Shown here in pieces: positions 3,847-59,100 of a stretch of 64,000 nt of DNA. Every line of letters starts with the position of its first letter. Position 1 is the first letter of the stretch. The notes below the pieces were generated by a model. That model was not told the origin of the DNA and did no database searches. It saw nothing but the letters and a program-made list of their open reading frames with translations. The position numbers and the translations under genes were made by a program. This DNA comes from Eukaryota sp. TZLM1-RC (Eukaryota > Protista > Metamonada: BaSk clade): contig JAUPSS010000003.1 in assembly GCA_040285825.1 (NCBI GenBank), positions 434,001-498,000 on the forward strand. Reading direction: 5' to 3'.

Positions 3847-6147
3847 GCTCCGGGCAAGCGAGTATTGATAAGTACTGACGCTTCAGATGTAGCAGTAGGA
3901 GGTGTTATTTGGCAAGAAATTGAACCCTACTCCCCTTCAGGAACCCCGCTAAATAAAAGGAAAGTGAAACCTTTGTCATTCTATAGTAGATTACTTACAG
4001 AAACACAAAGAAAATGGTCCACCTTACAAAAAGAATTATACGCAATACTTCTGATTTTAACTGAAAGTTGTTTAGAAAGCTACTTGTTAACTAGACATTT
4101 AACAATTTTTACAGATCATAAAAACATTGCATTCCTGGCTACAGCCCCAGAGAAAAATAGAATTGTAAAGAGATGGCTGCCGATACTATCTGAATTCGAC
4201 TTTGACATAGTCCACGAACCTGGTGAAGACAACCATTGGGCAGATATGTTATCGAGGAATATTGATTTGGATCAAAACGAGGAAACTTCTTCTATTTGTA
4301 GTATAAATATACCAGACACTTTACTTTCAAATTACGAGATACCTCCACTAGACGATGATTCTGATTCGGATCTTGAAGACATCCCTTCAATCTCATCTCT
4401 AAGTAGACACCAAGACCTACCTATTTTTTCTTCTTGGCTGTCTAAGATAAGATCTGAACAACAAATAGCCAAAAACAACAACGACTCTTTATTTGATAAC
4501 GCAATTCTAGATGTAAACACTCAAATTTGGAAAAATAATAAAAACAAAATTTTGATTCCAAAGAGCCTCAGTAAACAGGCACTATTATTAATACATGGTT
4601 TGGTTCAATCTGGTCACCCCAGCAAAAACGATAGTTTACACAAACTGTCCAAAAGCGATTTCTACTGGCCCAATATGAGAAAGGACCTTATTAATCATGT
4701 CAAAAGATGCCCAACTTGTCAAAAAACGGCTCCAGTTAAAAGATCAAAAACACCTTCCACAGGATCTTTATGGGCAGATCGTCCTTTTGCCAGATTAAAT
4801 GTCGATACAATTGGACCCCTAAATTCTGACAACGAAGGAAATAAATATCTATTAGTATTTGTAGACTCTTTTACTGGATATACATTTTTAGTCCCTCTAA
4901 AAGAACTTAATGCCTTAGAAACCGCAGATGCCTTGATTTGGAATGTTTGCGCTATCTTTGGCATACCTATGTTAATTCATAGTGATAATGGACCTGAGTT
5001 CGCCAATGAGACTTTCAAAATAGTGTGTAACAGATTAGCGATTGAGATGAGTAACTCAATTCCCCACTATTCAGAAAGTAATGGACTTGTAGAACGTAAA
5101 CATAGAGACGTTTTTCAATGCTTAAGGAAACTATTAATAGATTTCAATGATTACGGAAATTGGTCTACATACGTACCTATATCCCAACTATTAATAAATT
5201 CTACTAAAAGCAGAAAAACTGGTTTTACCCCATACGAACTCATGTTCGGTTCTTCGATTAGTCCAAGAACAGACCCTGCTAATATATTAGGAAATTTATC
5301 CAAATTTGAAACTAATATCCCTTTATTAGATGACATCAAAATGAAAAACACTCGTCTACAAGAAAAAAGGGAAGAAGCAGAGCGTCACCAAACATTGAAT
5401 ACTCCGTCTTCAGTAGATAATACTAATTCGTGTTTTATAGTATTTAATATTGGTGACTACGTCTTACGTAAAACCAAGCAAAATAATAAATTGCATGGAT
5501 CTTGGAATGGACCATTTTTAGTTATTGACCTTCCTTCCAAATCCACTTTATTATTGAAGAATCTTACTACTGGCACAGAATTAAAAGCTGCCAAGAAAGA
5601 TTGCAAAATCTATAACGCAGAAAATCCACAGGACATTGAATTCCTCAAGGCAGTCGCTGCGGGCGATTCCGAAAAACACGTTATAGAGAAAATCCTCTCA
5701 GAATACCACTCTGATTCAGGTAGTTTCTGTACTGTTCAGTGGTTTGGCGGTGAGACAACAGAAGAGCCACTCTATTCGGTTACACACTCAGAAGCTTATA
5801 AGTTATTTAGTAAGGATAACAAGAAAATTGGAAAACGTACCACTAGTCGACGACAAGGTACCTCCAATGAGTCTACGCCTTCTAAGAAGCCTAGACGCAG
5901 TAATAGAATTAGGAAGAGGAGCTAATTCTTAGTTTATATCGAATATTAATATTATATCGATTATATGTATTTATTTATAGTTATTTCGTTATTTGTATAT
6001 AGTTTTTATTTCATATTTATATAAGCTGATTTATTTTGAAAAAGGGAAGAAGCAGTGTTGGCGCCCTAAGGCTTATATAATATGATTAGAAAATAAATCA
6101 ACTTTTCCTCATTGACTTTTCTTTACTACAATAGACTTTAGGCAACA
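3847..6147 (+). mobile_element. Gypsy element A, 3' half (RNase H-integrase-chromodomain, PPT, 92-bp 3' LTR at 6056-6147)
   Basis: PPT GAAAAAGGGAAGAAGCAG directly before TGTTGG; LTR ends GGCAACA; the sequence then resumes inside a second pol (HWADML). Confidence 0.9.
3865..5925 (+). CDS. Pol fragment: RNase H, integrase, chromodomain-like tail
   Basis: TDASD and TDHK (RNase H); HGLVQSGH/CPTC; DTIGPL, SDNGPEF, NGLVER; GPF motif; VIEKIL...VQWFG...TTEEP. Confidence 0.92.
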   Translation: MISTDASDVAVGGVIWQEIEPYSPSGTPLNKRKVKPLSFYSRLLTETQRKWSTLQKELYAILLILTESCLESYLLTRHLTIFTDHKNIAFLATAPEKNRIVKRWLPILSEFDFDIVHEPGEDNHWADMLSRNIDLDQNEETSSICSINIPDTLLSNYEIPPLDDDSDSDLEDIPSISSLSRHQDLPIFSSWLSKIRSEQQIAKNNNDSLFDNAILDVNTQIWKNNKNKILIPKSLSKQALLLIHGLVQSGHPSKNDSLHKLSKSDFYWPNMRKDLINHVKRCPTCQKTAPVKRSKTPSTGSLWADRPFARLNVDTIGPLNSDNEGNKYLLVFVDSFTGYTFLVPLKELNALETADALIWNVCAIFGIPMLIHSDNGPEFANETFKIVCNRLAIEMSNSIPHYSESNGLVERKHRDVFQCLRKLLIDFNDYGNWSTYVPISQLLINSTKSRKTGFTPYELMFGSSISPRTDPANILGNLSKFETNIPLLDDIKMKNTRLQEKREEAERHQTLNTPSSVDNTNSCFIVFNIGDYVLRKTKQNNKLHGSWNGPFLVIDLPSKSTLLLKNLTTGTELKAAKKDCKIYNAENPQDIEFLKAVAAGDSEKHVIEKILSEYHSDSGSFCTVQWFGGETTEEPLYSVTHSEAYKLFSKDNKKIGKRTTSRRQGTSNESTPSKKPRRSNRIRKRS

Positions 6148-32760: not shown

Positions 32761-33930
32761 ACAAGTAGAAATAGAGTCATCAAATATACAACTAAAGCTC
32801 CACATACTTGAAACCCGCATTTCCCACAATGAAACAGTTAAGTACTAAAGATTCAGAAAGTTTACCAAAAGAAGGAAGTGAATCAGAAATTGATTTCATC
32901 ATTCCCTTGCGAATCGAAAACACAATCCTGTTTTGCCAATAAACACGATTAAAAATTCTTCGGGTTCTTTCCTTTACAACTACACAGAAATTCTTAAGGA
33001 ACGCCAATGCAGCCTTACCTAAAGACCCGAGCAAGTAAAAAACAAAGGGACATAAATTATAATACGCATGAGAGTTGTCATTCACATAAGAAGTTGGTTT
33101 CACGTATTTAGCAATTTAGTATTTTTCCCCAGCAAGAAGAGCATTATTGACATCAGAATTGATGAAATGTTCATCAGAATAATTACAATGGTTAACGAAC
33201 ATGGCATCTAAAATCGTGGAGCTTCCATTTAAGCCAAGAACAACCAAATCACCTCTTGTTAGACCCCGAAAAGCTCTATTGTTAAGTGTGTACTATCAAT
33301 ATTGGGGTCATCAAGAATTAATTTTGATAGCAAAGCCCTCAGAAGGAATCTACTCGACATGATTTGCACATGACATAAATTTGGTCCCTGACATTATTAT
33401 GCAGTTTACTAGTAAATGTAACAAAGTTTACAATTCAAGCGATGAGTAAACAAAAGAGGTTTTCCACATTTACGTGTGTAATGATCAGGCAAATGTTTGG
33501 CCACAAAAAACAAAAAAAACGCATGTTTAAAAGCCGTTCATTTTTTAAAAGGAAGTTTTTAAATAGAAGGAATTTGAGTTACTAAAGCAGCAGCTGCACT
33601 ATTACAAATGTCCTTAAAAAATTTCCGAAAGTGGGATTTTTAGTTTTGGCCAAGTCAAGTCCTACTTCATAATCCAAGCTTTCATATAATTTAACCAGAT
33701 GGTGCTCAAGCTTTTTCAGGCAAAAACGTAAATTTGGGATTGATCAGTTCGGAATTTCTTGAACATTCTGGGAAAAACACTGAATCCAGATATCACTGGG
33801 CAACTTATCTAATTCAAATTGAAGCTGATTTCAGTAAAAATTATATTCACTATTGATCAGATGAAAACCATAAAAGAACCTTTGGAAATTTCAAAAACAA
33901 AATTTTTTCGCTTCCTAAAAAAGCTGTTTT
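32761..33930 (-). mobile_element. Degenerate CRE-like non-LTR fragment, same family as 52578-55271
   Basis: Reverse-complement similarity, e.g. YNLCPFV...LLGSLGKAA...IFNRVYWQNRIVFSI. Confidence 0.85.
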
Positions 33931-35260
33931 AATTTTTAATGAATAATGAACCAATTTTCTAGTAAAATTATTGGAAATTGATGCATCTCAATTACGAAGC
34001 CACATTTTTTGTGGTACAGATTTTGGTGGTGTTGATTTTCATAAATCAAGCTACCTTTGTAAAGCTGTCTTTACTGGAGGCGGTAAAAATTATATTTTTG
34101 AATTTGTGAATCGCTTTCCAAAAAAGTTGATCTCATTGAAAACTGTGGAAGCTCATATCTTACTTCTTTACAACAGGAAATTGAAACTCTTTCACCAAAT
34201 ATTTGGTCTAAATGTTTTCCCTCTAAAATTGTGGAACTTCCTTCAAGAAGCATGCTATCCTTACCCTGGACTTTTGCAAAATTGCAGAAAAAAATCTAAA
34301 AAAAAATAAAGTCTAATAAAAAAATAAAGTTGAAAAAATAAAGTCTATAAAGTTCGAGAAAACTTGGATTATATTGTACGTCTTAGCTTGTCTAAAGAAA
34401 AAATCCCGTTTTAGCAAATTTTTTATTGATCTTGAAGACAGTTGTTCAAGTTGCCTAATCTCACAAATTCCCAACATTGATGGCCTTTTACTTAATGATA
34501 ACCAATGCACCACTGCAATGAGAATGGGATGTTTCTTATGGCCATGTTCGTTACTAAATGATTTAATTTGTCGCTGCAAGAGTGTGGTTACACTTTCCCA
34601 TATTTTAAACTGCAAATATTTTATAACTTATCGCTCAATTGTTCATGACTCTGTTCGTGGTCAATTATATGCCATGTGCAAAAGTTTCAATATAGAGGCA
34701 TTGATTGAGCTTTTAGTTCGTCTTCAGATCAAACTGATGATTACTTTGGTAAAAGAAGGGCAGATTTAGTAGCTCTAGGGATCGATGGTGTTCTCAATGT
34801 TGTGGATGTTGTCTAAGTAATTGTCTGCAAAAATTCTGCTGCTCGTTTAGTGTATTCCGATGATTCGCCACTATCTAACGCCGAAAAAAAGAAAATCAAA
34901 AAGTATGAAGAACCATTGGCACAATTAGGTAGAGTTGAACATGTGAAATATCAGTTTGTACCGTTTGCAATTTCTCTGTTTGGCAATATTGGACTTTCAG
35001 GGTTACACTTTTTTGAAGACTTCAAGAAAAATTTTACTGAAAGGTCTGGTAAAAAAATGAATTCCACTTTTTGGTTTAATAGAATTGTTTTTTGCATTTT
35101 CAAGTCTTTTACAACAATGATTTCCACAGCATTTTTTGCTATTGGTGTAGAATATGAACGAAATGATGTGAGTAGGTGTATTAATAGTGATGCTTGTTTG
35201 GAGGATATTGAATATTAGATAGAATTGAATTTCAATAAAAATACAGTACAATAAAAAAAT
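33931..35260 (+). mobile_element. Degenerate CRE-like non-LTR 3' half with A-rich tail
   Basis: HIFCGTDFGG, CRC...HILNCKYF, HDSVRGQ, KIKKY, FVPFAISLFG. Confidence 0.82.
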
Positions 35261-35312: not shown

Positions 35313-37715
35313 TCTTAGCTCATGTGCACGAATATTCATAAAATTAGAGTTAAAACAGTGTTTATGGATCAGAGTTAAGAAAATCAAACTATAACAAGTA
35401 CAAAAAAATTTAAACTATGAATCACGTGATAAGAAACGTGATACTTTTTGAAACGGGTTTAGTTTCAGTTAGCACTGCCTCTTCTTCTTCCTTTTTCACG
35501 TCTCTTCTGGGCAAAAGGATTAGATTACTTGATAAATCAGTGATAGGCGGCTGTGTTACTAATGAAGACTACGAGTTGCTTGGTGGTGGTACCATCAGAC
35601 CATAGGACAGTGGCAATGTCCGATTCAATGCCTAAAATAGCATCGAGAAAGGCCTTTCCGCTGTCAGCAGCAGCTTAGGCATCGAAAACAGATTGGTGTA
35701 ATGAAGAATAAAAGGGCTTTACCAAATGAATAGATGTCTTAAGGCTTGAGCGGGTCACAGGATTGAGCAGAAGCACGGAACTAGGGGATGATACTTCCTG
35801 AACGATATATGGACCAACGTAGTGGCCATGGAGCTTGTCTGGCTTCTCGCGCAGAACAAAGACTCGATCGTTTACTTGAGGAGCATAATTCAGAGGGGTA
35901 GATGGCGGTGTGTTCTTGGAGGCGGAAATTACAAAGGCCCAAGAATGAGTCACTCAGTTAGTGATGGAAACGGTATGTTGGAGATATTCAGGGACGTCAG
36001 GTTCTTGAAGTATAGTTGAAAAGCGATCTAGTATAGAACAAAGTAGTAAGCGAGGAGAGGTTTCGGTGAATATCAGTTGGTAGGGGGAGTGGTTTAGAGA
36101 TGGACGATGGTGGGAGTTGATCAGCAAATTGGAACGTAATGACCACCAATTGTCATTATCAGAGAAGTCAAGTAGTAGTTTCCGGAGGGCTTGAAGGAAG
36201 GTTCGGTGTTGTCGTTCTACTAAACATGTGGACTAATGAAAGTGGGGAATGGACAGGGTGTGTTTGATGTCCAAATAGGAGCACATCAAGGCAAAGATCC
36301 GGTTGGATAAATCAGAGCCATTATCGGAGTGGATTAATTTTGGCGCACCAAATACTGATAATACATGAGTAAAAAGGGCGTCGACTACAGTTTGGGCTGT
36401 GACATCACGGGAAGCAACTAGTATGCTGAGTTTAGAGAACGCGTCCTTAAAATGGATAATGTTTATGTATCTGGCGACATCTGGGGAGAGCGGACCATTA
36501 CTATCACAGTGTAAGTACTCAAAAAGAGCGGCTAGCGAAGTTAAGGGAACCAGTAGGTAAGAGGTGGTGAAAAGGGACCGGGGAGGTCTTCTGGCAGGGA
36601 ATGCAATTCTTGATGTGGGTAGCCAGATCATATTTCACGGATGGCCAATAGTAGTCTAAAGCTTGCAGCTTCTTTTAACAGTCGTCACATGGGGCGTGTC
36701 CAGCTTCAGTGGCTCCGCGAATGAGTAAAAGAATCTCAGAGTGTAGGGATAAGGGAACCAGAATCTTGTACGCTTCAGATAGTTTCTAGCCAGATTGAGA
36801 ATTGATTCTGGAATTGGTAAAGAAAGGATCGTCATCGGGAAGCTTTTGTTGAGCTTTGAATAACTTGTTTATCACAGCCTGGGCAGAGAAGCTTCTGGTA
36901 ACGGGACGAAGGTGATCAAAGCTTGCTGAGGAGTCGTTTGGTGTGGTGGCCATTACGGCAAATACGATTTGGACATCGTTATCGGAGTCAGAGGTAATGT
37001 CGATGAATGAGCATGAGTAGAAGAAGAAAACGTGAGGAAGCATGGCTTGATGGAGTTGTTTTTCAGAGGAGATTTGTCCTAGTTGATAAGACTGAAGGTT
37101 GGAGCTGAAAGGGCAGGATTCTTCGTCGTCAGAACTGGCAGGAGGTTGAGTGAAGCTAGAGAAGTTACGGCGAGGTGCGGACTTAGCTTCTTTACGGAGG
37201 ACAGTGACGGGCTCAGAGGGACTTCCTAAGAGATTATCAGATTCCGAAGTTTGGGAAAGTCTGGATCTCAGCTCAGCTACCTCCTTATTGAGCAACTCCA
37301 CACGATAGTGTTCGGCAAAACGGGAAGAGGACAAGGGCGCGCTGAAGCTGGAGGAAGTCTGGACGTTAGCGGAAGGCGGGTATCTTGTCATGTTTGTCAA
37401 GACATGATTGGACATACGAGAAGTGTAAATCTTTAGCGCCTCAACATAGCAGGAGATGGACACTCGACCGGTATGCTCTAAATACGGGGCGACTGAGGAA
37501 ACGCCGGCAGAGGCAGAGGCAGGAGTGGATTTTTTCGGATCCACAGTAATTACTGTTGGCTTATGTATACGAATATCCATAAAACTAGAGTTAAAACGGA
37601 GTTTATGGATCAGAGTTAAGAAAATCAAACTATAACAAGTACAAAAAAATTTAAACTATGTATCACATGATACGAAACGTGATACTTTCCGAAACGGGTT
37701 TAGCCTTAGCTAAAA
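35313..37715 (-). mobile_element. Internally deleted Gypsy element E (gag start fused to an integrase remnant)
   Basis: Diverged LTRs at ~35313-35474 and ~37554-37715; PPT GGAAGAAGAAGAGGCAG; integrase HSDNG and KLHGHYVGPY. Confidence 0.82.
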
Positions 37716-37734
37716 TCAGCAGAACAAAATAAAT

Positions 37735-38060
37735 GATTTCGAATCAAAGATTCGTTGACTTCTAATTAATTAGACAAGAATTTGACCCGATGTTTGTTAA
37801 ACGATGAGCCAAAAATTGAAAGACACCGAAGGATGAGTTTTCTTCAAAAGTGAGTAAAATGTCCCAAATAACAAATTTTTAAAATCAAAAATATAATGTG
37901 TTTTTCAACGTCACATTCAGCAAGAAAACTTAGATTCTTGTCACAAGTATGCAATAAATTGTTCAACTGGGAATAAATTTCAACTACATTACCAAGCTAG
38001 CATCCAAACAAGTTTCATCCAATGCTTTTTGGTCACAATTAATAAAAGGAATGTCACCAT
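37735..38060 (-). mobile_element. CRE-like non-LTR fragment
   Basis: Reverse complement resembles 52600-52920 (ECDVEKHI...LKICY). Confidence 0.7.
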
Positions 38061-50422: not shown

Positions 50423-51088
50423 TCATATGAATGCAGTAGAAGACTCAGAATCCCTGGCAAAGGTTCGAAATAAATCCAGTATTCGATCACCATTCAGCAA
50501 TAGATTTTGAGACAGTAGGGGAGAGGGGTTAGAAAAAGGACGGAAGCAAGTGACGAGGGTAGAGAGACGTTGATAAAGAGAAAGAAGGAAAGGGTGGGGC
50601 AGGGTTGAGGTTGTTAGTTTGTACAAGAAGGAGACAATTAGTTGCCGATCATGATTCCATGATGGGGTGATGAATGATGGTTTAATTGAGCAAAGGAGGA
50701 TTACTATTGCCGAAGCATGGGATAAGTCACAATCAGTGTTGAGTAGTGAAAACCAGTGTTTGGAAAAGTTTTGGAACTGAGGATGAAAACATGCAGGAAG
50801 TAGACTCTTCTGTAGCTTTAATACAAGGTGTGGAACATCAGGAATAGAAGAGAGGGAAGACAGCCAGACTGATTCATATGAAGTCCAGGCAGCCACAAAA
50901 GAACTTGAGGGAAGGGACCTATGACAATGTAGTAACAGCTCTGTGTTGATCATTCTACGAAATAAGTGCCCCTGCATAGTAGAGACTTTTATATTTGATT
51001 TGATTCCAGAATCAATCTTGTATTCATGGTTATATTCCATAGAGGAAGGAAGAAAAAAAACTTTACTTAAAATAAAAGTGATTCTCAA
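50423..51088 (-). CDS. Hypothetical helical protein
   Basis: 221-aa ORF with two W...L...P...W-like units; start uncertain. Confidence 0.4.
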   Translation of the reverse strand: MRITFILSKVFFLPSSMEYNHEYKIDSGIKSNIKVSTMQGHLFRRMINTELLLHCHRSLPSSSFVAAWTSYESVWLSSLSSIPDVPHLVLKLQKSLLPACFHPQFQNFSKHWFSLLNTDCDLSHASAIVILLCSIKPSFITPSWNHDRQLIVSFLYKLTTSTLPHPFLLSLYQRLSTLVTCFRPFSNPSPLLSQNLLLNGDRILDLFRTFARDSESSTAFI

Positions 51089-51264
51089 TTTCCGACATAA
51101 AGAGTGGTAGTAGCTGCAAGCAAGGATTCGTCGGAGAAGGTTCGTAGTAGAGTAAATGATGAAATGTTGTAAGTGATGAAATGAAATTCAATTACGAATC
51201 TGGGGAATGATGACAACCCAACCAAACTTCACTCACCAACTTTTGTAACATGTAGGCTTTTTTG

Positions 51265-51477
51265 ACTTAAAGGCTTTTTTTGAAAAATGTTGAGCTGTGG
51301 TTTCACAGAACAAAGCCTCGCGACTTGATGTATCTAAGTGGATCTACCAAATACTACTATGGCATTTGTAGATCGGTCTCAAAAGATTTTGTTTCTGTAT
51401 GCTCAGGTTCCCCATTCATCTCCTCAACAGAGCATCTGGGCAAATGTATTTTTTTCGGCCACAATTCCGCTTTCTTC
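51265..51477 (-). ncRNA. Candidate Fanzor omegaRNA scaffold ending in a transposon-end sequence
   Basis: Directly downstream of RuvC-III; stems 51341-51352/51364-51374, 51305-51314/51388-51398 and 51399-51404/51430-51435. Confidence 0.55.
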
Positions 51478-53456
51478 TTAATTTGAATATTTTTTTGCAG
51501 CGGAAATATCTTTGTCATATACTATTTGACACTCAGTACAAATACGCATCTGCCATGAGATTGCTTGAATATTCTCGGCCATGCAACAACTTGACAGTTT
51601 GCTTGTATTAAATTCACTGGTTGACAAGTGCTTCAAGTCCTTTTGATAACACAACCATTTTCTGAAAGCCCTTGCTGATCCATATCGATTGACTTTTCGG
51701 CAATGAGAAGGTAAATTAGCAGAACCCACAGCAAGATAGAGTTTTTCAGGATGTCCAGCCAGCCTTTGAAATTAGTTGAGACTCTCTCTGAACCGTCTCT
51801 CTTTTCGTCTGCGGTTATCAAATTTAATTATTTTCCATTTCTGGCGATTACTTTCCAAATACACTTTCTTCTTGACCAAATTCCAATGGTTCAAATATTG
51901 GTTGAAATTTTCAACGGAATAATGGTTGGGAGAGTGTTTACTGAATGAAGTTTTTGTCATGTATCTTCTGCCAGTTGGACAAGGGATAATTCCACATTGA
52001 TAATCATTTAAGAAGAAACCACATAATCTTGATTGTCCCAGATCAACGCCAATAAGGGGCCTTTCAGGTAAAATTTCGACTGGTTGTCTACGTCTTCGAC
52101 GGGGCATTTTTTCAGTGCCCTTCAGCTGTGTTTCTCTGGTTTTGTTGGCATTAGGGTCACTTTTCATTTCATTTTTTGATCTTCTTTTCTTTTTCGGTGG
52201 TTCATCCAGCTCATCTGTGTTTTCTGAGTCATTATTGTTACCTTCAAAGATCAAAAGCAGTTCATTTCATTAGTTTTCAATAAAATTTTTGAAATCTATT
52301 ATTCAATCTTTTACTGTTGATATTGAATTTTTGCTAAGGACAATGTTTGAATATTCGTTTCAGACATGTATGGTTGATGAACTTTGTGTTGGAAGATGAT
52401 CCTTCAATAAGTGGGAATTTTTCAGAGTGGAAAACATGTGAAGGTACCTCATGAAATTTATGAGAAACTAAAATTTTTATTCTAAATTTCTTCCAGCAAT
52501 GCATGTGAGAAAAGAAAGTGAGTAAGTATTGTGCAATTTTAAGATTAAAGAGAAAAAGCTCACCAATTTCCTTTAATCTTTGATGATTGGTGGAGCTCAG
52601 ATTCCTTTTATCAATTATGACCAACAAGCTTTTAAGTTTCTTGGATGTTGGCTTGGCAATTTGGATGAAATTTATTCCCAGTTAAACAATTTATTGGAGA
52701 AGTTTGACAAGGATCTTAGTTTTATTGCTGAATGTGACATTGAGAAACACATCAAATTTTTTTATTTTAAAAATTTGTTATTCTGGAAAATTCACTCATA
52801 TTTTAAGGTCAACTCCCCTTCGGTATCTCTCAATTTTTGCAGATCTTTTAACAAACTTCGAGTCAAATTTTTTTCTTTTTTTATTAGAAGTAAATGAATC
52901 TTTAATTCGAAGTCATGTATTTTGTTCAGCAGATTTGGGTGGCATTGGATTCACCAAATCTTCGATTCTGTGTAAAGCAGCATTTTTGGGAGGTGGTAAA
53001 AATTTTGTTTTTGAATTTTTCCAAAGGTTCCCTTTTGATGTTCATCTGATCAATGGTGAATCAAATTTTTATTTGAATCAACTTCAAATCGAATTAGATA
53101 ATTTGCCTAGTGATATCTGGATTCAGTGTTTTCCTCAAAATGTTCAAAAAATTCCCACCCGATCACTTCCAAATTTACGTTTTTGCTTGAAAAAGCTTCA
53201 GCACCATCTGGTTAAATTATATGAAGGCTTGGATTATGAAGTAAGACTTGGCTTGGCCAAAACTGAAAATCCCGCTTTCGGTAATTTTTTAAAGGATATT
53301 CGTGATAGTTCAGCTGCTGCTTTAGTAACTCAAGTTCCCTCTGTTTATGGACTTTTGTTAAAAGACAATGAATGGCTTCTAAACATGCGTTTTCGTTGTT
53401 TTCTGTGGCCAAACAATTTGCCCAATCATTTAACTTGTAAATGTGGTAAACCTCTT

Positions 53457-54559
53457 TGTTGTTGTTGCACTCAAATTGAATTAGTAGGTTTCGTTGTATT
53501 TCGACTGATGACGTGATACTCATTTATGAATCAGTTTTATTAATAAACAACAGATTTCTCTCTCCCCTTCGTGTGTTCATCTGCCTAACGGCATCAATAA
53601 TTATTGGCCCTTCTTATTTCAGATGACTGTTCCTTCTGTCAACCTCCCGTCTCTTTCTTCCATGAAAGTTGAAAGTGTTCTCTTGTTCCTACAAGAGTGG
53701 AAGATCTATTCTTCTGTGACTTCTAAGAAAGAGCTTGTTCCAGCAAGACTCTTGGTCGATTCTTTTCTGTTAGAGTCCCTATCTCTCCAGAAATCCGACG
53801 TCTCTTCCAGTGACGATGTTCTTCTTAGACATCTTCAATCTGTCGTATCGTTCGCCACGTACGAAGATTTTAGTCTGGCTATGTCAGAACTGAAGCTTGA
53901 TGTCCGTATTGGTGACGTCCGAGAACGTATGTCCTGTTACCTGCGACGTTTCCTCCAGGTAAAGAGTAGGGCTTCCGGACTGAAGTTACCAGACACAGCT
54001 TTTCTGAATCGATTTGCCAGAGGAATTCTTCCCGTAGGTCTTCAACGTTCTCTACTAGCGAGAATTCGAGATGATGTATTCCCAGATCTTCACTCTCTTG
54101 TCGAAACCACTACTGATGAGCTGTTGGACTGCTCTAGGGTTGCTTCATGGACTCGTGGTTTCAAAACCTCAGTGAATGATGTGGAACGTACGGCTGGCAC
54201 TAAAACGAGGTCCTCTTGGCGCTCTCAGGATTTAAAAAATCAATCGTGCTTCAAGTGCCACAAGCCTGGACACATCTCCCGCGATTGTCCATCTAAAATC
54301 AAACATGAGGTAAATTATTTGTGTCACACAAACGATGCACCAAAGAGTTTAACAAACCCCATATCTTCCCTCTATTGAGCCAGTACTGTATTTGTCCTCA
54401 GAAAAGTGGGAAAAAGTAGTGTTGTTGTTGCACTCAAATTGAATTAGTAGGTTTCGTTGTATTTCGACTGATGACGTGATACTCATTTATGAATCAGTTT
54501 TATTAATAAACAACAGATTTCTCTCTCCCCTTCGTGTGTTCATCTGCCTAACGGCATCA
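53457..54559 (+). mobile_element. 1103-bp gag-only LTR mini-retrotransposon
   Basis: Identical 140-bp LTRs at 53457-53596 and 54420-54559; 4-bp TSD TCTT; PPT at 54401-54419; empty site visible in the paralogue near 33441-33470. Confidence 0.95.
53623..54378 (+). CDS. Gag protein (capsid-like region + CCHC knuckle), 251 aa
   Basis: Intact ORF; FARGI helix; CFKCHKPGHISRDC. Confidence 0.88.
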   Translation: MTVPSVNLPSLSSMKVESVLLFLQEWKIYSSVTSKKELVPARLLVDSFLLESLSLQKSDVSSSDDVLLRHLQSVVSFATYEDFSLAMSELKLDVRIGDVRERMSCYLRRFLQVKSRASGLKLPDTAFLNRFARGILPVGLQRSLLARIRDDVFPDLHSLVETTTDELLDCSRVASWTRGFKTSVNDVERTAGTKTRSSWRSQDLKNQSCFKCHKPGHISRDCPSKIKHEVNYLCHTNDAPKSLTNPISSLY

Positions 54560-56106
54560 TCTTTTGTTTACTCATCTTTTGAACTGTAAACATTTCATTA
54601 CGTTTAGAACCAAAGTGCATAATAACGTCAGGGACCAAATTTATGTAATGTGCAAATCATATCGAGTAGATTCCTTTTTAGAACCGCTGTTATCAAAATT
54701 AATTCTCGATGATCCCAATATTGATAGTACGCGTTACAACAGAGCTTCTATGGGTCTGACTAGAGGTGATCTAGTTGTTCCTGGTTTAAATGGTAGTTTT
54801 ACTATTTTGGACGCCATGTCTATTGACCCTTGTAATTCCTCTAACGAACATTTCATTAACTCGGATGTAAATAATCCTCTTCTTGCAGGCGAAAAATATA
54901 AAATTGCTAAATATGCGAAACCCATTTCCTCGGTTAATAAAAATTCTCATGCCCAATATAATTTATGTCCATTTGTTTTTTCTTTGCTTGGATCTCTAGG
55001 TAAGGCTGCTATGGCTTTCCTTGAGGATTTTGTTGTAGTTGTAAAGGAAAGAACTGGAAGAATTTTCAATCGTGTTTACTGGCAAAACAGGATTGTATTT
55101 TCTATTTTTAAGGGAATGGTAACACTAATTTCTGATTCACTATCTTCTTTTGGGAAATTTTCTGAATCTTTAGCGATTAATTGTTTTGATGTAGGGGAGG
55201 CAGGTTTTGAGGATGTGGAGTTTTAATTGTGTATTTCATATTTGTTGTTGAATAAAAATAAATTGCAAAAAAATTTCCTTTAATGAAAAGGTGATTTTAT
55301 CATGTGAGAACAGAAGGGAAGCAGTGGTAGGAACTCTTTGCAGGAGATTCAAGATAAACTTACATGCAATTAATAAAAAGAATCTTTCTCTTGAATTATT
55401 CAGAATGAAATTGATGTAGTGTTCAAGAACAGAATCAACAACTACTTCCTCCGGTTGGGCTAATAGTTCATCTGGCAAAAGTGAGAGAATATTATTGCCA
55501 AAGACATTTGTTTTATCTAGAGCTCCACAATGAGCACGAATAAAGTTTTTAACCCAGGATTGACAAACTTTAGGTAATATTGTCTTCACGTTAGACGCCA
55601 ATTGACGAGCCCGACAAGCAGAGTAAGGGGAAAGCCCTTTTCTATTGAATAAAATTACATTTCTGAGACTGCAGCCAAGCATTGAGAAAAAGATTGAATG
55701 AATTTCTATAAGGCACCAAAGAATTTTCCCACAAAGAAACAAGAGACCTGTCTTGTGGGCATTCAGGAAGAAATCCACTGTAAAAGATATGGAGTAATTG
55801 GCGTTGGCCTTTAGATGTGGAAGGCTTTGGAAAAGAACCAGTGGTGATGACGGTCAAAAAAAGATACCATATATCCTGTTCCACTAAAGCTCTAGATGCC
55901 AACGGAAAATTTAGAAGAAAAGATTTAAGCAATAAAGAAGCTTCATGACAAATATCGGTGACCAAAGGAAGGTCAGTCCGAATTTGTTGCACCGCTGCAG
56001 GGGTGAGCAGCGAGTTAAGTGCACAAGACCGAGTGAATACACGTGACACAAAATAGATGTCGGTCATGTAGTGAGAATTAACAGCTCATCTATCAAATTT
56101 TACACT

Positions 56107-59100
56107 TGTCACCCCATTTTCGACTTCTTGTTGCCTGTTCTGGGAGATTTTTAACCCTCAACTTGGTTTTGGGAGGTTTTCGCTATTCCCACACTTTCCC
56201 CTCACTTTATAAACTACCTTCTTATTTCCCTCACTTAAATTATTTTTTCGAGCTTTAGGACTCCCCTGTAATCATTCAACTTGTTTTTAGTACTCCCTCA
56301 GTTCATGCCCATTACTGGTCCTCCACAAACTACAACTTATGCTGCTTCACCACCGACGCCTACGCTTACACCCACGCTTCCATTACCCTTTTTCTACACA
56401 ATAATTCTAGGCTTTCGTTCGCTACCCCCTGTTACTAACCTTTTCTCAGTCCCAATTCGTATATGCCGATGGAGCGGACCGATCAAGAAGAAATCTGTTT
56501 GTTTCTTCTCTCAAATTCTTCCCAGAGTTGTGTGGTACTTGTACCTTTTATTTTTCAATTGTTTATTCGTTTGGTTACTTTGATTTTTCTTGAACAATCC
56601 TTGGATGAATCTTTTTCTTTCACCCCCCTCTCATTTGAATTTGTCTCTAACGAAGGTTATGTTGAGGGGTGAAATCTAGCGTTGAAAAATATCTTTCGGA
56701 GAAGATCCTTCTCACCCTCCTTCCAGTAAAAGTTCGAGTACAATGAGTGCTCCATTTAAGGAAACGAGAACCACTCCTTCCTCAAGGATTTCGGATGTAG
56801 TTCATCCCACTCCTCCACAAACGAATTCAGGTGTTCCCTAGTCAACTTCCCCTCAAACGAGTTCGAGTGTCCCACATTTCACTTAAGGTGAAACGAGTTC
56901 AGGTGTTTTTCACCTCACTCCCAGTCAATTTAGTTCGGGTCAACACCCCACTACCACACAAACGAACGCAAGATTCTCGTCTCGCTTCACATAGCATGAG
57001 TTCGGGTCAAAACCGCTCTCCCAATTGAAAAGTACACTTAACGGGTTGTACAACCCTGACCACGGGCATTTTTTCTCAAGTCAAAGCTCCTGTCATAAGC
57101 CCTGAGTTAGAAGCGCTCCGCGCCACTCTATTAAAGGAAGAGAGTGAAAAACAGGAACAAACGGACTTCGTAGAGTCCGGACTATCAGATACGTCTCTGT
57201 ACCCAGACGTGGAAAATGGTGTCTCGATACAGAGATTAAGTGAGATCATAGTCGTTTTTAGGGAAATTCCATTGACCCCAAAAACACTAAGAGATTCCAT
57301 AGCGCTTCTCAACCATACCTGGGCATGACGTCATGACGTCATGACAAAAAGTGTCATGACAACGTGTCATGACAAACAGCCTTTTTGTCATGGTTTATGA
57401 CAGTCTGATTTTAGTAGTTCAGTCACTTGTTATAATAGTTGAACATCACAATAAAACATACCTGGGCATGACACACACCCTCATTTATTGAATGAAAACT
57501 GTTTTGACCTTATTAGCAATCAATAAATTAACATTTTTTTTTATCTCAATAATTATTCCAGTTTTAAAAATAAAAAAATAAAATTTTCTAAAAAAAATAA
57601 ATTAACATTTTGTCATGAGTGTCATGATTGTCATGACGGAATTGTCATGACAAACGTGTCATGACAGTGTCATGACAAACGAGGGTGGGTGTCATGCCCA
57701 GGTATGTTCTCAACCAAGAAAGCAAAGAGTTGTCGGATAGACGTGCAAAACGCAGAATAGGACTATCCTCATCAAATTCCTCTTATAAATTCATCATGTT
57801 TAAAACTCGCGCTGCAGATTCGATTTTATTGGAAAAAGAGCCACCTTTGACATGTATTATTTTAGAATTCGGTGGTTAGATGTCTTGGAATATATTAAGG
57901 ACTTCTCCGGTAAATAAGATGGACCCGAGAGCGTACACCTCCTCCCAGACTAGTTTAGACCAGGTTTGGACAGAATTTTCGACAACAAAAGTACTTCTGA
58001 AGATGATTATATGGTAGTCAGAGAGGCTTATGCATACTACCCATACTCATCAAACCCTGATCTCGTTGAGATGAAACTCGTTTCTCAACCAAAGAGGTTA
58101 AAGTAGATTTAGAAGCCAAGGTGACCGTGGTACAAAAGGTACATTGTGGATACATGTTTTATAGAATCCAATCATCGCGCGCTACAGCTCCCAAACTGAG
58201 ACATACACATTCAATTGATTAATTGGAAAAATACAGCTCAAGCAACCCTCTTGAACCCACTCTCTTTCGGTAATAATAATAAATTGGATAAATATTGGAT
58301 TTTAAGCAGCCTAGAAAGAAATGTATGCAATCGAGCAGATGAATTTGCACCTTGTATAAACCACAGAAGATCCAAACAGCCTCAGTTTTCAGAACTTTAC
58401 GTTAGAATTAACAATACTGTCATAAAAGACATGATAGACACAGCTGCATTTTGTTCTGCCATTTTCCTTGACCTAGCAAATAAATGTGCAATGTCCATAA
58501 ATGAAAACGACATACCACAATTCATCCCTGCTGGCAATGTATCAGTGAAATCGCTTGGGAGTACACAAAGCATTCTGACGTTCAATGTTGGCAGCATCGC
58601 GAACCAAGTATCAATAAATCATACTCTCCCCATTATACCAGGTTCGAACAAATTTTTAATTGGGGTGAACATGTTAAAACAACTTGGGCTATTGACATCT
58701 GACCGTTTAGTTATTTTATTAGACGAAGAGCACCGCACCGTGCTGAATGCTGAAGCCGTTTTTGATAACAGGATTAAAATTCACCAAATTGGCCATGTAG
58801 AATCAACTTCTTGCAGTGAAGAAGATTTTACTCAGCAATTAGATAGATCTCGATGTGAGATTAATTTAAATGACAGTGAGTATAATAAGAGTTTGTCTGA
58901 TATATTACCTCAATACAAGGACGTATTCAGCGAAAAGCCCAATAAAGATGGGATCGATTGTCAACCTATGACGATCCCCTTCTACAATACTAATACAATT
59001 ATACATAAACCAGCTCGGGGCCTCAGCCCAAAAAATTACAAATAGCCAATCAGATTTTTGATGAATTGATTGAAATGGGATATGCAATTGAATCGAACTA

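Follow-up and report, generated by a model that had tools for sequence, protein, structure and literature searches.

Is the interrupted coding sequence on the minus strand of contig JAUPSS010000003.1 the remnant of an RNA-guided nuclease gene, and if so, of which kind, and do relatives exist that could still be active? The contig belongs to genome assembly GCA_040285825.1 of Eukaryota sp. TZLM1-RC, a strain which we take to be the soda-lake flagellate Skoliomonas litria. The locus lies in a stretch of 64,000 nucleotides (contig positions 434,001 to 498,000), here called the window, to which coordinates without a prefix refer. Other loci and proteins are designated by L and P numbers, respectively, and all paralogous loci are from the same assembly. 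A preliminary description of the window had proposed a Fanzor1-type gene between 51265 and 56067, reassembled across two nested insertions. We find that the part from 56361 to 51298 is very probably an old, dead copy of an approximately 3-kb element without a transposase, which once encoded a TnpB/Fanzor protein of about 645 amino acids, most likely of the Fanzor1 kind.

Remains of one gene and its relatives

What is left of a single gene of about 645 codons lies on the minus strand from 56067 to 51416, interrupted by two retroelements, one nested in the other. Five stop-free pieces are followed by a short tail in two further frames. Piece A (55651 to 56067, codons 1 to 139) starts with an ATG conserved in L001, L004 and L005 and is 46% identical to P0018 and P0023, which it matches directly upstream of their Fanzor core. 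Piece B (55285 to 55640, approximately 118 codons) belongs to the N-terminal half and aligns with P0011, P0038 and P0039-type proteins, while piece C (52337 to 52576, 80 codons, with two in-frame deletions inside) shows 67% identity to an open reading frame (ORF) of L004 (5419-5679). Piece D (51775 to 52266) comprises a basic linker and the RuvC-I motif GVDLG (52050-52036; Asp codon 52044-52042), which aligns with the IDP/VDP motif of all relatives; the basic clusters KKKRR and RRRRR in the linker look like candidate nuclear localisation signals. Piece E (51497 to 51771) contains a Gly at the canonical RuvC-II position (51726-51724), a substitute Glu (51615-51613), a CC...CxxC zinc finger (51588-51529) and the RuvC-III Asp (51510-51508). 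The motifs singled out in the preliminary description are thus all encoded, with SEFNTSK...CC...CTEC at 51618-51529 and DKDISAAK at 51516-51493. The tail leads to the ancestral stop, a TGA after ...ALLRR (51416 to 51418), the frame of which was taken from P0001, P0007 and the alignment.

On both sides the element extends into non-coding sequence. The 5' non-coding part (56068 to 56361, minus strand) has no defined left end, homology reaching 56361 with L001, approximately 56222 with L004 and 56192 with L005. At the other end, the first 118 nt of a 3' non-coding, omegaRNA-like region are kept (51298 to 51415, minus strand, 96% identity to L008), and the element breaks off at 51298. The extent proposed earlier therefore holds for its start, one gene beginning at 56067; its other limit has to be revised, as coding ends at 51416, homology ends at 51298 and positions 51297-51265 lie outside the element.

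Pieces B and C are separated by an insert of 2,694 bp (52578 to 55271), which is flanked by a perfect 13-bp direct repeat (AATTTCCTTTAAT, 52565 to 52577 and 55272 to 55284). Removal of one repeat and the insert (52578-55284) fuses B and C into a frame of 270 codons across ...ITFSLKEI|GELFLFNLK.... Four paralogues (L004, L005, L006 and L007) are continuous across the insertion point, the NCBI protein P0038 spans the join (...ITFSSKEVGELFLFNLK...), extending from piece B to piece E, and one read contig of 1,283 bp passes directly from 52564 to 55272, leaving out exactly 2,707 bp. Since paralogous DNA, P0038 and the read contig are independently continuous here, the B|C join is ancestral, which bears out both the target-site duplication and the in-frame fusion of two minus-strand ORFs put forward in the preliminary description. 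The NCBI model P0038 itself (932 amino acids) is a chimera of Fanzor ORFs and ORFs of a long interspersed nuclear element (LINE).

Four proteins of TZLM1-RC that are annotated as 'hypothetical' match piece E with 76-86% identity. A profile of 222 columns (A3), covering the RuvC half and tiled from unaltered ORF pieces of the window and its paralogues, retrieved just 15 proteins at E<=1e-3 from 1.84 billion cluster representatives. Thirteen of these are convincing and stem without exception from TZLM1-RC, TZLM3-RCL or GEM-RC1; the remaining two look spurious, with scattered low-complexity matches. A region-limited homologue search yielded no further relatives. Among the relatives are P0011 (659 amino acids, E 2.6e-38), P0012 (592 amino acids, E 4e-8; one of nine copies of this length in TZLM3-RCL), P0016 (539 amino acids) and P0023 (1,323 amino acids). 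Six of them (P0009, P0011, P0012, P0016, P0023 and P0025) pass PF07282, the Cas12f1-like TNB family, at 28-33 bits (gathering score 26.3).

In a read-through sequence of the window copy, each break was filled with X. This sequence gives a collinear alignment of 581 columns with P0011 (E 1.6e-49, 27% identity); at its N-terminus it shows 46% identity to P0018 and P0023 and also aligns with the N-terminal part of P0041. As its two halves, N-terminal and C-terminal, are collinear with one and the same set of intact relatives, both belong to one protein family; hits of the two halves to unrelated families, which would have spoken against a single gene, were not obtained. In profile searches of PDB sequences, only Cas12m, the TnpB-like LaTranC and other RNA-guided nucleases were retrieved, always with the zinc-ribbon/RuvC-III region.

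Active site, fold and assignment to the Fanzors

The motif described for TnpB and Fanzor proteins is D-X(125,275)-[TS][TS]-X-X-[C4 zinc finger]-X(5,50)-RD (Bao & Jurka 2013, PMC3627910). The read-through fits it with D-X145-TS-KL-(SS)CC...CTEC-X5-KD. In Fanzors, RuvC-II is rearranged, with Gly or Pro at the position of the canonical Glu and a conserved Glu approximately 45 residues downstream (Jiang et al. 2023, PMC10530073). In the window's family the canonical position is taken by Gly (LAVGSAN, VWFGNGG or AMGDAAF), and a substitute Glu is found 37 residues downstream in (S/D)E(F/Y)xTS, conserved across the family alignment. Judged by these motifs, the predicted active site is of the rearranged Fanzor type, in the order Asp, Gly, relocated Glu, zinc finger and Asp. 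The earlier match to a RuvC D-E-D triad with zinc finger is correct in that the residues are encoded, with the amendment that the Glu of SEFNTSK is the relocated one and that Gly occupies the canonical position.

The RuvC half of P0039 was modelled from an alignment of 24 rows (predicted local distance difference test, pLDDT, 67; core 80-92). In a Foldseek search of the PDB, the Fanzor1 of Spizellomyces (SpuFz1) ranked first (E 1e-5), followed by Cas12j, Cas12f, Cas12g and the Fanzor1 of Parasitella (PpFz), while the mimivirus Fanzor2 (ApmFz2) and ISDra2 TnpB were found at ranks 36 and 42. Sequence identity among the leading structural matches is highest for the Fanzor1 structures. The nearest models in BFVD and the ESM Atlas are giant- and insect-virus 'transposases' of 600-880 amino acids with a TNB domain. 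The modelled fold of P0039 is that of a Cas12/TnpB/Fanzor RuvC domain with an inserted zinc ribbon, in agreement with the RuvC/Fanzor fold expected in the preliminary description; the model favours Fanzor1 over Fanzor2, yet does not separate it from the Cas12 types.

Membership in the TnpB/Fanzor superfamily is accordingly indicated by the collinear relatives, their TNB domain and the modelled fold, and this part of the earlier assignment stands. For the narrower name, Fanzor1 is on balance the likelier label, based on length, the Gly/Glu pattern and the structural ranking. SpuFz1 (SPu-1-1p, 633 amino acids; PDB 8GKH and 9CEU) resembles in length the protein of about 645 amino acids encoded here, and in both approximately 400 amino acids precede RuvC-I. 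The residues conserved among Fanzor1 proteins in SPu-1-1p are G500 and E536, a spacing of 36 (PMC3627910), compared to 37 in the window's family. The two differ in that SpuFz1 has no sequence-level match to the family. Furthermore, the 33-bp terminal inverted repeats and the TA duplications of SPu-1 (PMC3627910) contrast with the window's family, for which no terminal inverted repeats were detected and the right end of which carries a terminal hairpin.

Alternatively, the family might lie within the TnpB superfamily but outside the Fanzor1 clade, either as a separate eukaryotic radiation or nearer to Fanzor2/TnpB2. We consider this the less likely reading. ApmFz2 of Acanthamoeba polyphaga mimivirus (PDB 9B0L) and IS607-type elements share the rearranged catalytic Glu, the TNB zinc finger and the RuvC fold with the window's family. 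However, ApmFz2 and ISDra2 TnpB ranked clearly lower than SpuFz1 in the structural comparison, the length ahead of RuvC-I and the G...E spacing are those of SpuFz1, and hallmarks of Fanzor2/IS607 elements were not encountered: the element has a single ORF and no serine recombinase of the IS607 type, and PF12323 (HTH_OrfB) was not matched by the window pieces, P0005, P0009, P0011, P0012 or P0016. Bacterial TnpB (ISDra2, PDB 8H1J; IS200/IS605) has the D...TS..C4...RD motif, PF07282 and a structured 3' or right end (the RNA gene in TnpB) in common with the family; it differs in its length of approximately 400 amino acids, the canonical RuvC-II Glu, its dependence on TnpA and its prokaryotic hosts.

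Several observations weigh against the reading of the locus as a dead Fanzor1 element. No relative was detected by sequence outside the three sister genomes, and the tie to known Fanzors consists of one domain, the motifs and a model of medium confidence. The match of window piece E to PF07282 (23.4 bits, E 6.9e-5) lies below the gathering score, and searches of Pfam and the PDB with single pieces gave this TNB match only and no solved Fanzor. The modelled P0039 is a distant relative (20-25% identical) and not the window protein itself; moreover, a full-length AlphaFold model of P0012 reached a pLDDT of 36, so that the N-terminal 400 amino acids are without a demonstrated fold. No terminal inverted repeats pairing the left and right ends were found, and no transposase ORF is present inside the element or associated with it (a hAT gene lies beside L004 only). 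Finally, for the Fanzor part the read contigs stem from a paralogue with 95% identity and not from this very copy, and the single-base lesions described below are known from the assembly only.

By analogy with characterised Fanzors, the ancestral protein of such an element would have bound a structured RNA from the element's 3' end, and DNA matching the guide of this RNA would have been cut by a single RuvC site. This site would consist of the Asp of GVDLG, the relocated Glu of SEFNTSK and the Asp of RDISAA, with the CC...CxxC zinc finger between the last two. By the same analogy, the 3' region would serve as omegaRNA scaffold, with the guide derived from the flank.

Decay of the copy and the nested insertions

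Lesions of the window copy were called against the eight paralogues, and read contigs were compared as well. A majority consensus of the nine copies was used for locating lesions only; it was wrong in the A-rich stretch of the putative nuclear localisation signals and was not used further. Besides the insertions, the copy has five 1-bp frameshifts, two stops, two small in-frame deletions and a cut 3' end. The preliminary description was right to call it dead, and the lesions are more numerous than those it listed.

Between A and B, an additional T (55648 to 55649, minus strand) shifts the frame; it is absent in L004, L005 and the read contigs, and an ORF of L004 (4781-5167) reads through, joining A to B. 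The in-frame deletions in piece C amount to 9 nt (approximately 52456-52461) and 3 nt (approximately 52422) compared to four paralogues and the read contigs. Piece C ends at a TAG (52334 to 52336, minus strand), which corresponds to TAC (Tyr) in L005, L006 and L007 and to CAG in L004, the read contigs having 52334 C>G. Two deletions of 1 nt each (52266 to 52286; approximately 52285 and 52266) shift the frame between C and D, where P0005, which bridges C to D, and P0038 read straight through. The TAA between D and E (51772 to 51774, minus strand) is AAA (Lys) in six paralogues and ACA in L004, with 51774 A>T in the read contigs. Piece E runs into a stretch of seven A (51490 to 51496, minus strand), which has six in all eight paralogues and in the read contigs; as proposed earlier, dropping one A gives AAKNI, which is also found in P0001 and P0007. 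A second additional A (51449 to 51455, minus strand) was recognised by comparison with paralogues and read contigs. P0001 and P0007 continue as ...RDISAAKNIQIKKKAELW(P/L)ERYICPDALLRR to the stop. Next to the RuvC-III Asp, Arg is replaced by Lys (KD in the window, RD in the paralogues).

The right end is lost, since five paralogues and the read contigs go on for approximately 165-175 bp beyond 51298. The lost part was not found anywhere else in the window, so that the truncation is not a simple split by an insertion, and no inverted repeat of at least 14 nt links the regions around 49.3 kb and 51.3 kb of the window. The codons for the catalytic Asp, Glu and Asp and for all four cysteines of the zinc finger persist, which is without consequence given the number of lesions: the window copy can make neither a protein nor a complete guide RNA.

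It might be argued that the small lesions are errors of the long-read assembly and that nothing but the nested insertion and the truncated 3' end broke the copy. In favour of this, homopolymer runs contain or adjoin four of the five frameshifts, and the Fanzor part of the locus is not covered by any read contig with 99% identity. This explanation is nevertheless improbable. The 1,283-bp read contig differs from the window at every listed lesion, and both stops are substitutions. Over 1,154 bp, the window and the nearest read contig differ by 53 substitutions and 16 gap letters, and the divergence from the paralogues is 4-20%; with substitutions outnumbering gap letters and the paralogues this far apart, the differences reflect real divergence and not an error dominated by indels. 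Furthermore, the young insert in the same stretch matches the read contigs almost perfectly. Among the public contigs of DNA runs (X1-X3; window 51364-52564 and 55272-56237), which hold this insert nearly perfectly, the Fanzor part is represented only by the 95% paralogue contig at approximately fourfold flank depth; the version present in the window is not among them.

The insert is oriented along the plus strand, and its AATAAA...A5 end directly adjoins the repeat. As its ORFs align with the part that follows RVT_1 in two reverse-transcriptase genes annotated on other contigs (L003 and L004), it is assigned to the 3' part of a 5'-truncated non-LTR retrotransposon (LTR, long terminal repeat). 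The same LINE family is also present at 32779-33931 and 37713-38052 of the window (80-85% identity). In L005 (4397-5737), a LINE 99% identical to the window insert is integrated independently, in sense orientation, inside another copy of the Fanzor family, with its own duplication of 12-13 bp (ATGCTTGGCTGC).

The window insert in turn carries a gag-only LTR element (53457 to 54559, plus strand), as had been noticed earlier, with LTRs at 53457-53596 and 54420-54559, a gag ORF at 53623-54378 and a target-site duplication TCTT(T). The two LTRs of 140 bp are 100% identical, and the gag ORF of 251 codons encodes a CCHC zinc knuckle (zf-CCHC, E 6.6e-6). Empty sites were identified in the LINE copy at 33931-32779 of the window (site 33453-33457), in the LINE of L005 and in read contigs skipping 1,107 bp. 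A further copy of the 140-bp LTR (97% identity) is located inside a related LINE at L003:1967-2110, on the strand opposite to the window LTRs.

The sequence shows three successive events. The Fanzor copy first decayed, accumulating its five frameshifts, two stops and two in-frame deletions and losing its last 165-175 bp. A young LINE-like element then inserted antisense by target-primed reverse transcription, giving rise to the 13-bp duplication. The insertion of the gag-only LTR element into this LINE is the most recent event, because its LTRs are identical.

The repeat family and its wider lineage

Eight paralogous loci match the element with 80-96% DNA identity, so that at least nine dispersed copies are found on five contigs, sharing their non-coding ends. 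Some copies are 5'- or 3'-truncated; these, together with the internally deleted derivative L001, identify a dispersed repeat family. In L001 (6001-6539, P0001), the internal deletion joins the first approximately 65 codons to the last approximately 100, and the annotated intron of P0001 is an artefact. The copies sit on contigs of 1.35 to 6.9 Mb among eukaryotic genes and were hit by eukaryotic retroelements, as expected for residence in a eukaryotic nuclear genome. It is highly improbable that the remnant is a former host gene domesticated from a Fanzor instead of a transposon copy. The lack of an identified transposase, of terminal inverted repeats and of a target duplication of the Fanzor element itself would fit a host gene, but dispersed copies with common non-coding ends, deleted and truncated forms and 80-96% identity are the pattern of a repeat family.

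Complete copies of this family are made up of a 5' non-coding part (150-300 bp), a single ORF and a 3' non-coding part of approximately 273 nt. In one complete paralogue, the 3' part has a folding energy of -85 kcal/mol (z -4.9, far better than shuffled controls), and the right end finishes in an 11-bp terminal hairpin (GTGAATTTCAC...GTGAAATTCAC) with a loop of 17 nt. No Rfam family was matched in the window, L003 or L008. Complete right ends are found at L008:4926-5198, L003:6600-6872 and L006:5190-5367. For each of the five copies that retain a right end, the annotated gene that comes next has the same orientation, starting 30 (L003:6872-6903), 39 (L008:5198-5238) or 65 nt (L006:5367-5433) past the hairpin and, in copies which have lost the hairpin, 99 (L004:7056-7156) or 156 nt (L007:6557-6714) past the conserved core; the ends do not abut the ATG. 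The Fanzor ORF of L004 contains approximately 157 additional bp (5676-5836), which are flanked by a direct repeat of 11 bp, TTCAA(A)CAATGC, and may represent a small non-autonomous insertion.

Two other places in the window were noted. Just past the Fanzor end, a minus-strand stretch of 168 bp (51088-51255) shares 98% identity with the start of an RRM_1 gene on another contig, covering its upstream region and its first codons (L002 1280-986); an ORF of 46 codons (51225-51085) ends here in the RNP2-like TLYVGN, and this looks like a recent partial duplicate of the gene start. At 58645-58818 (minus strand), a weak tblastn match to piece E (E 0.53) is possibly another zinc-ribbon relic or due to chance, and an overlapping plus-strand ORF (58215-59042) has a weak match to a gag-type aspartyl protease (E 6.6e-4).

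Active relatives elsewhere in the genome had been suggested in the preliminary description. In the window's own family, all nine copies found are defective. TZLM1-RC also has a sister family with 20-25% identity in the RuvC half, of which at least seven ORFs, 577-621 amino acids long, fall within one cluster of 90% identity; multi-copy ORFs of 589-592 amino acids are present in TZLM3-RCL and GEM-RC1. The suggestion is thus supported for related families and not for the family of the window. The closest intact relative of the latter is an uninterrupted ORF of 1,323 codons in TZLM3-RCL (L009:2501-6472, P0023), the product of which consists of a leader of approximately 97 amino acids, XPG_N and XPG_I (a FEN1/EXO1-type nuclease), a linker and a Fanzor with TNB domain. 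The leader ends in DVEPNPG, which is 2A-like, yet the next residue is M and not P. The window's family starts directly at the Fanzor N-terminus without a fused nuclease, and no relic of XPG or another nuclease was found upstream of the ATG in the window.

We propose, tentatively and with somewhat less than an even chance, that the relic stands for a Fanzor lineage which has diverged deeply and is restricted to Barthelona-Skoliomonas metamonads. This lineage would be undetectable from other Fanzors by sequence and without terminal inverted repeats, would have a right end with a hairpin, and would include potentially active members (the ORFs of 577-621 amino acids here and the nine 592-amino-acid copies of TZLM3-RCL) as well as one XPG-Fanzor fusion (P0023). 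In the literature searched, no paper combined Fanzor with Skoliomonas, metamonads or XPG. The window copy adds a dead member to a known kind, and the wider lineage is of more interest. The nested insertions provide a clean relative chronology for three mobile-element families of this genome, and the intact relatives are candidates for tests as compact RNA-guided nucleases. Being a fossil, the locus has its value as a marker: Skoliomonas and its relatives carry very divergent Fanzor families of their own.

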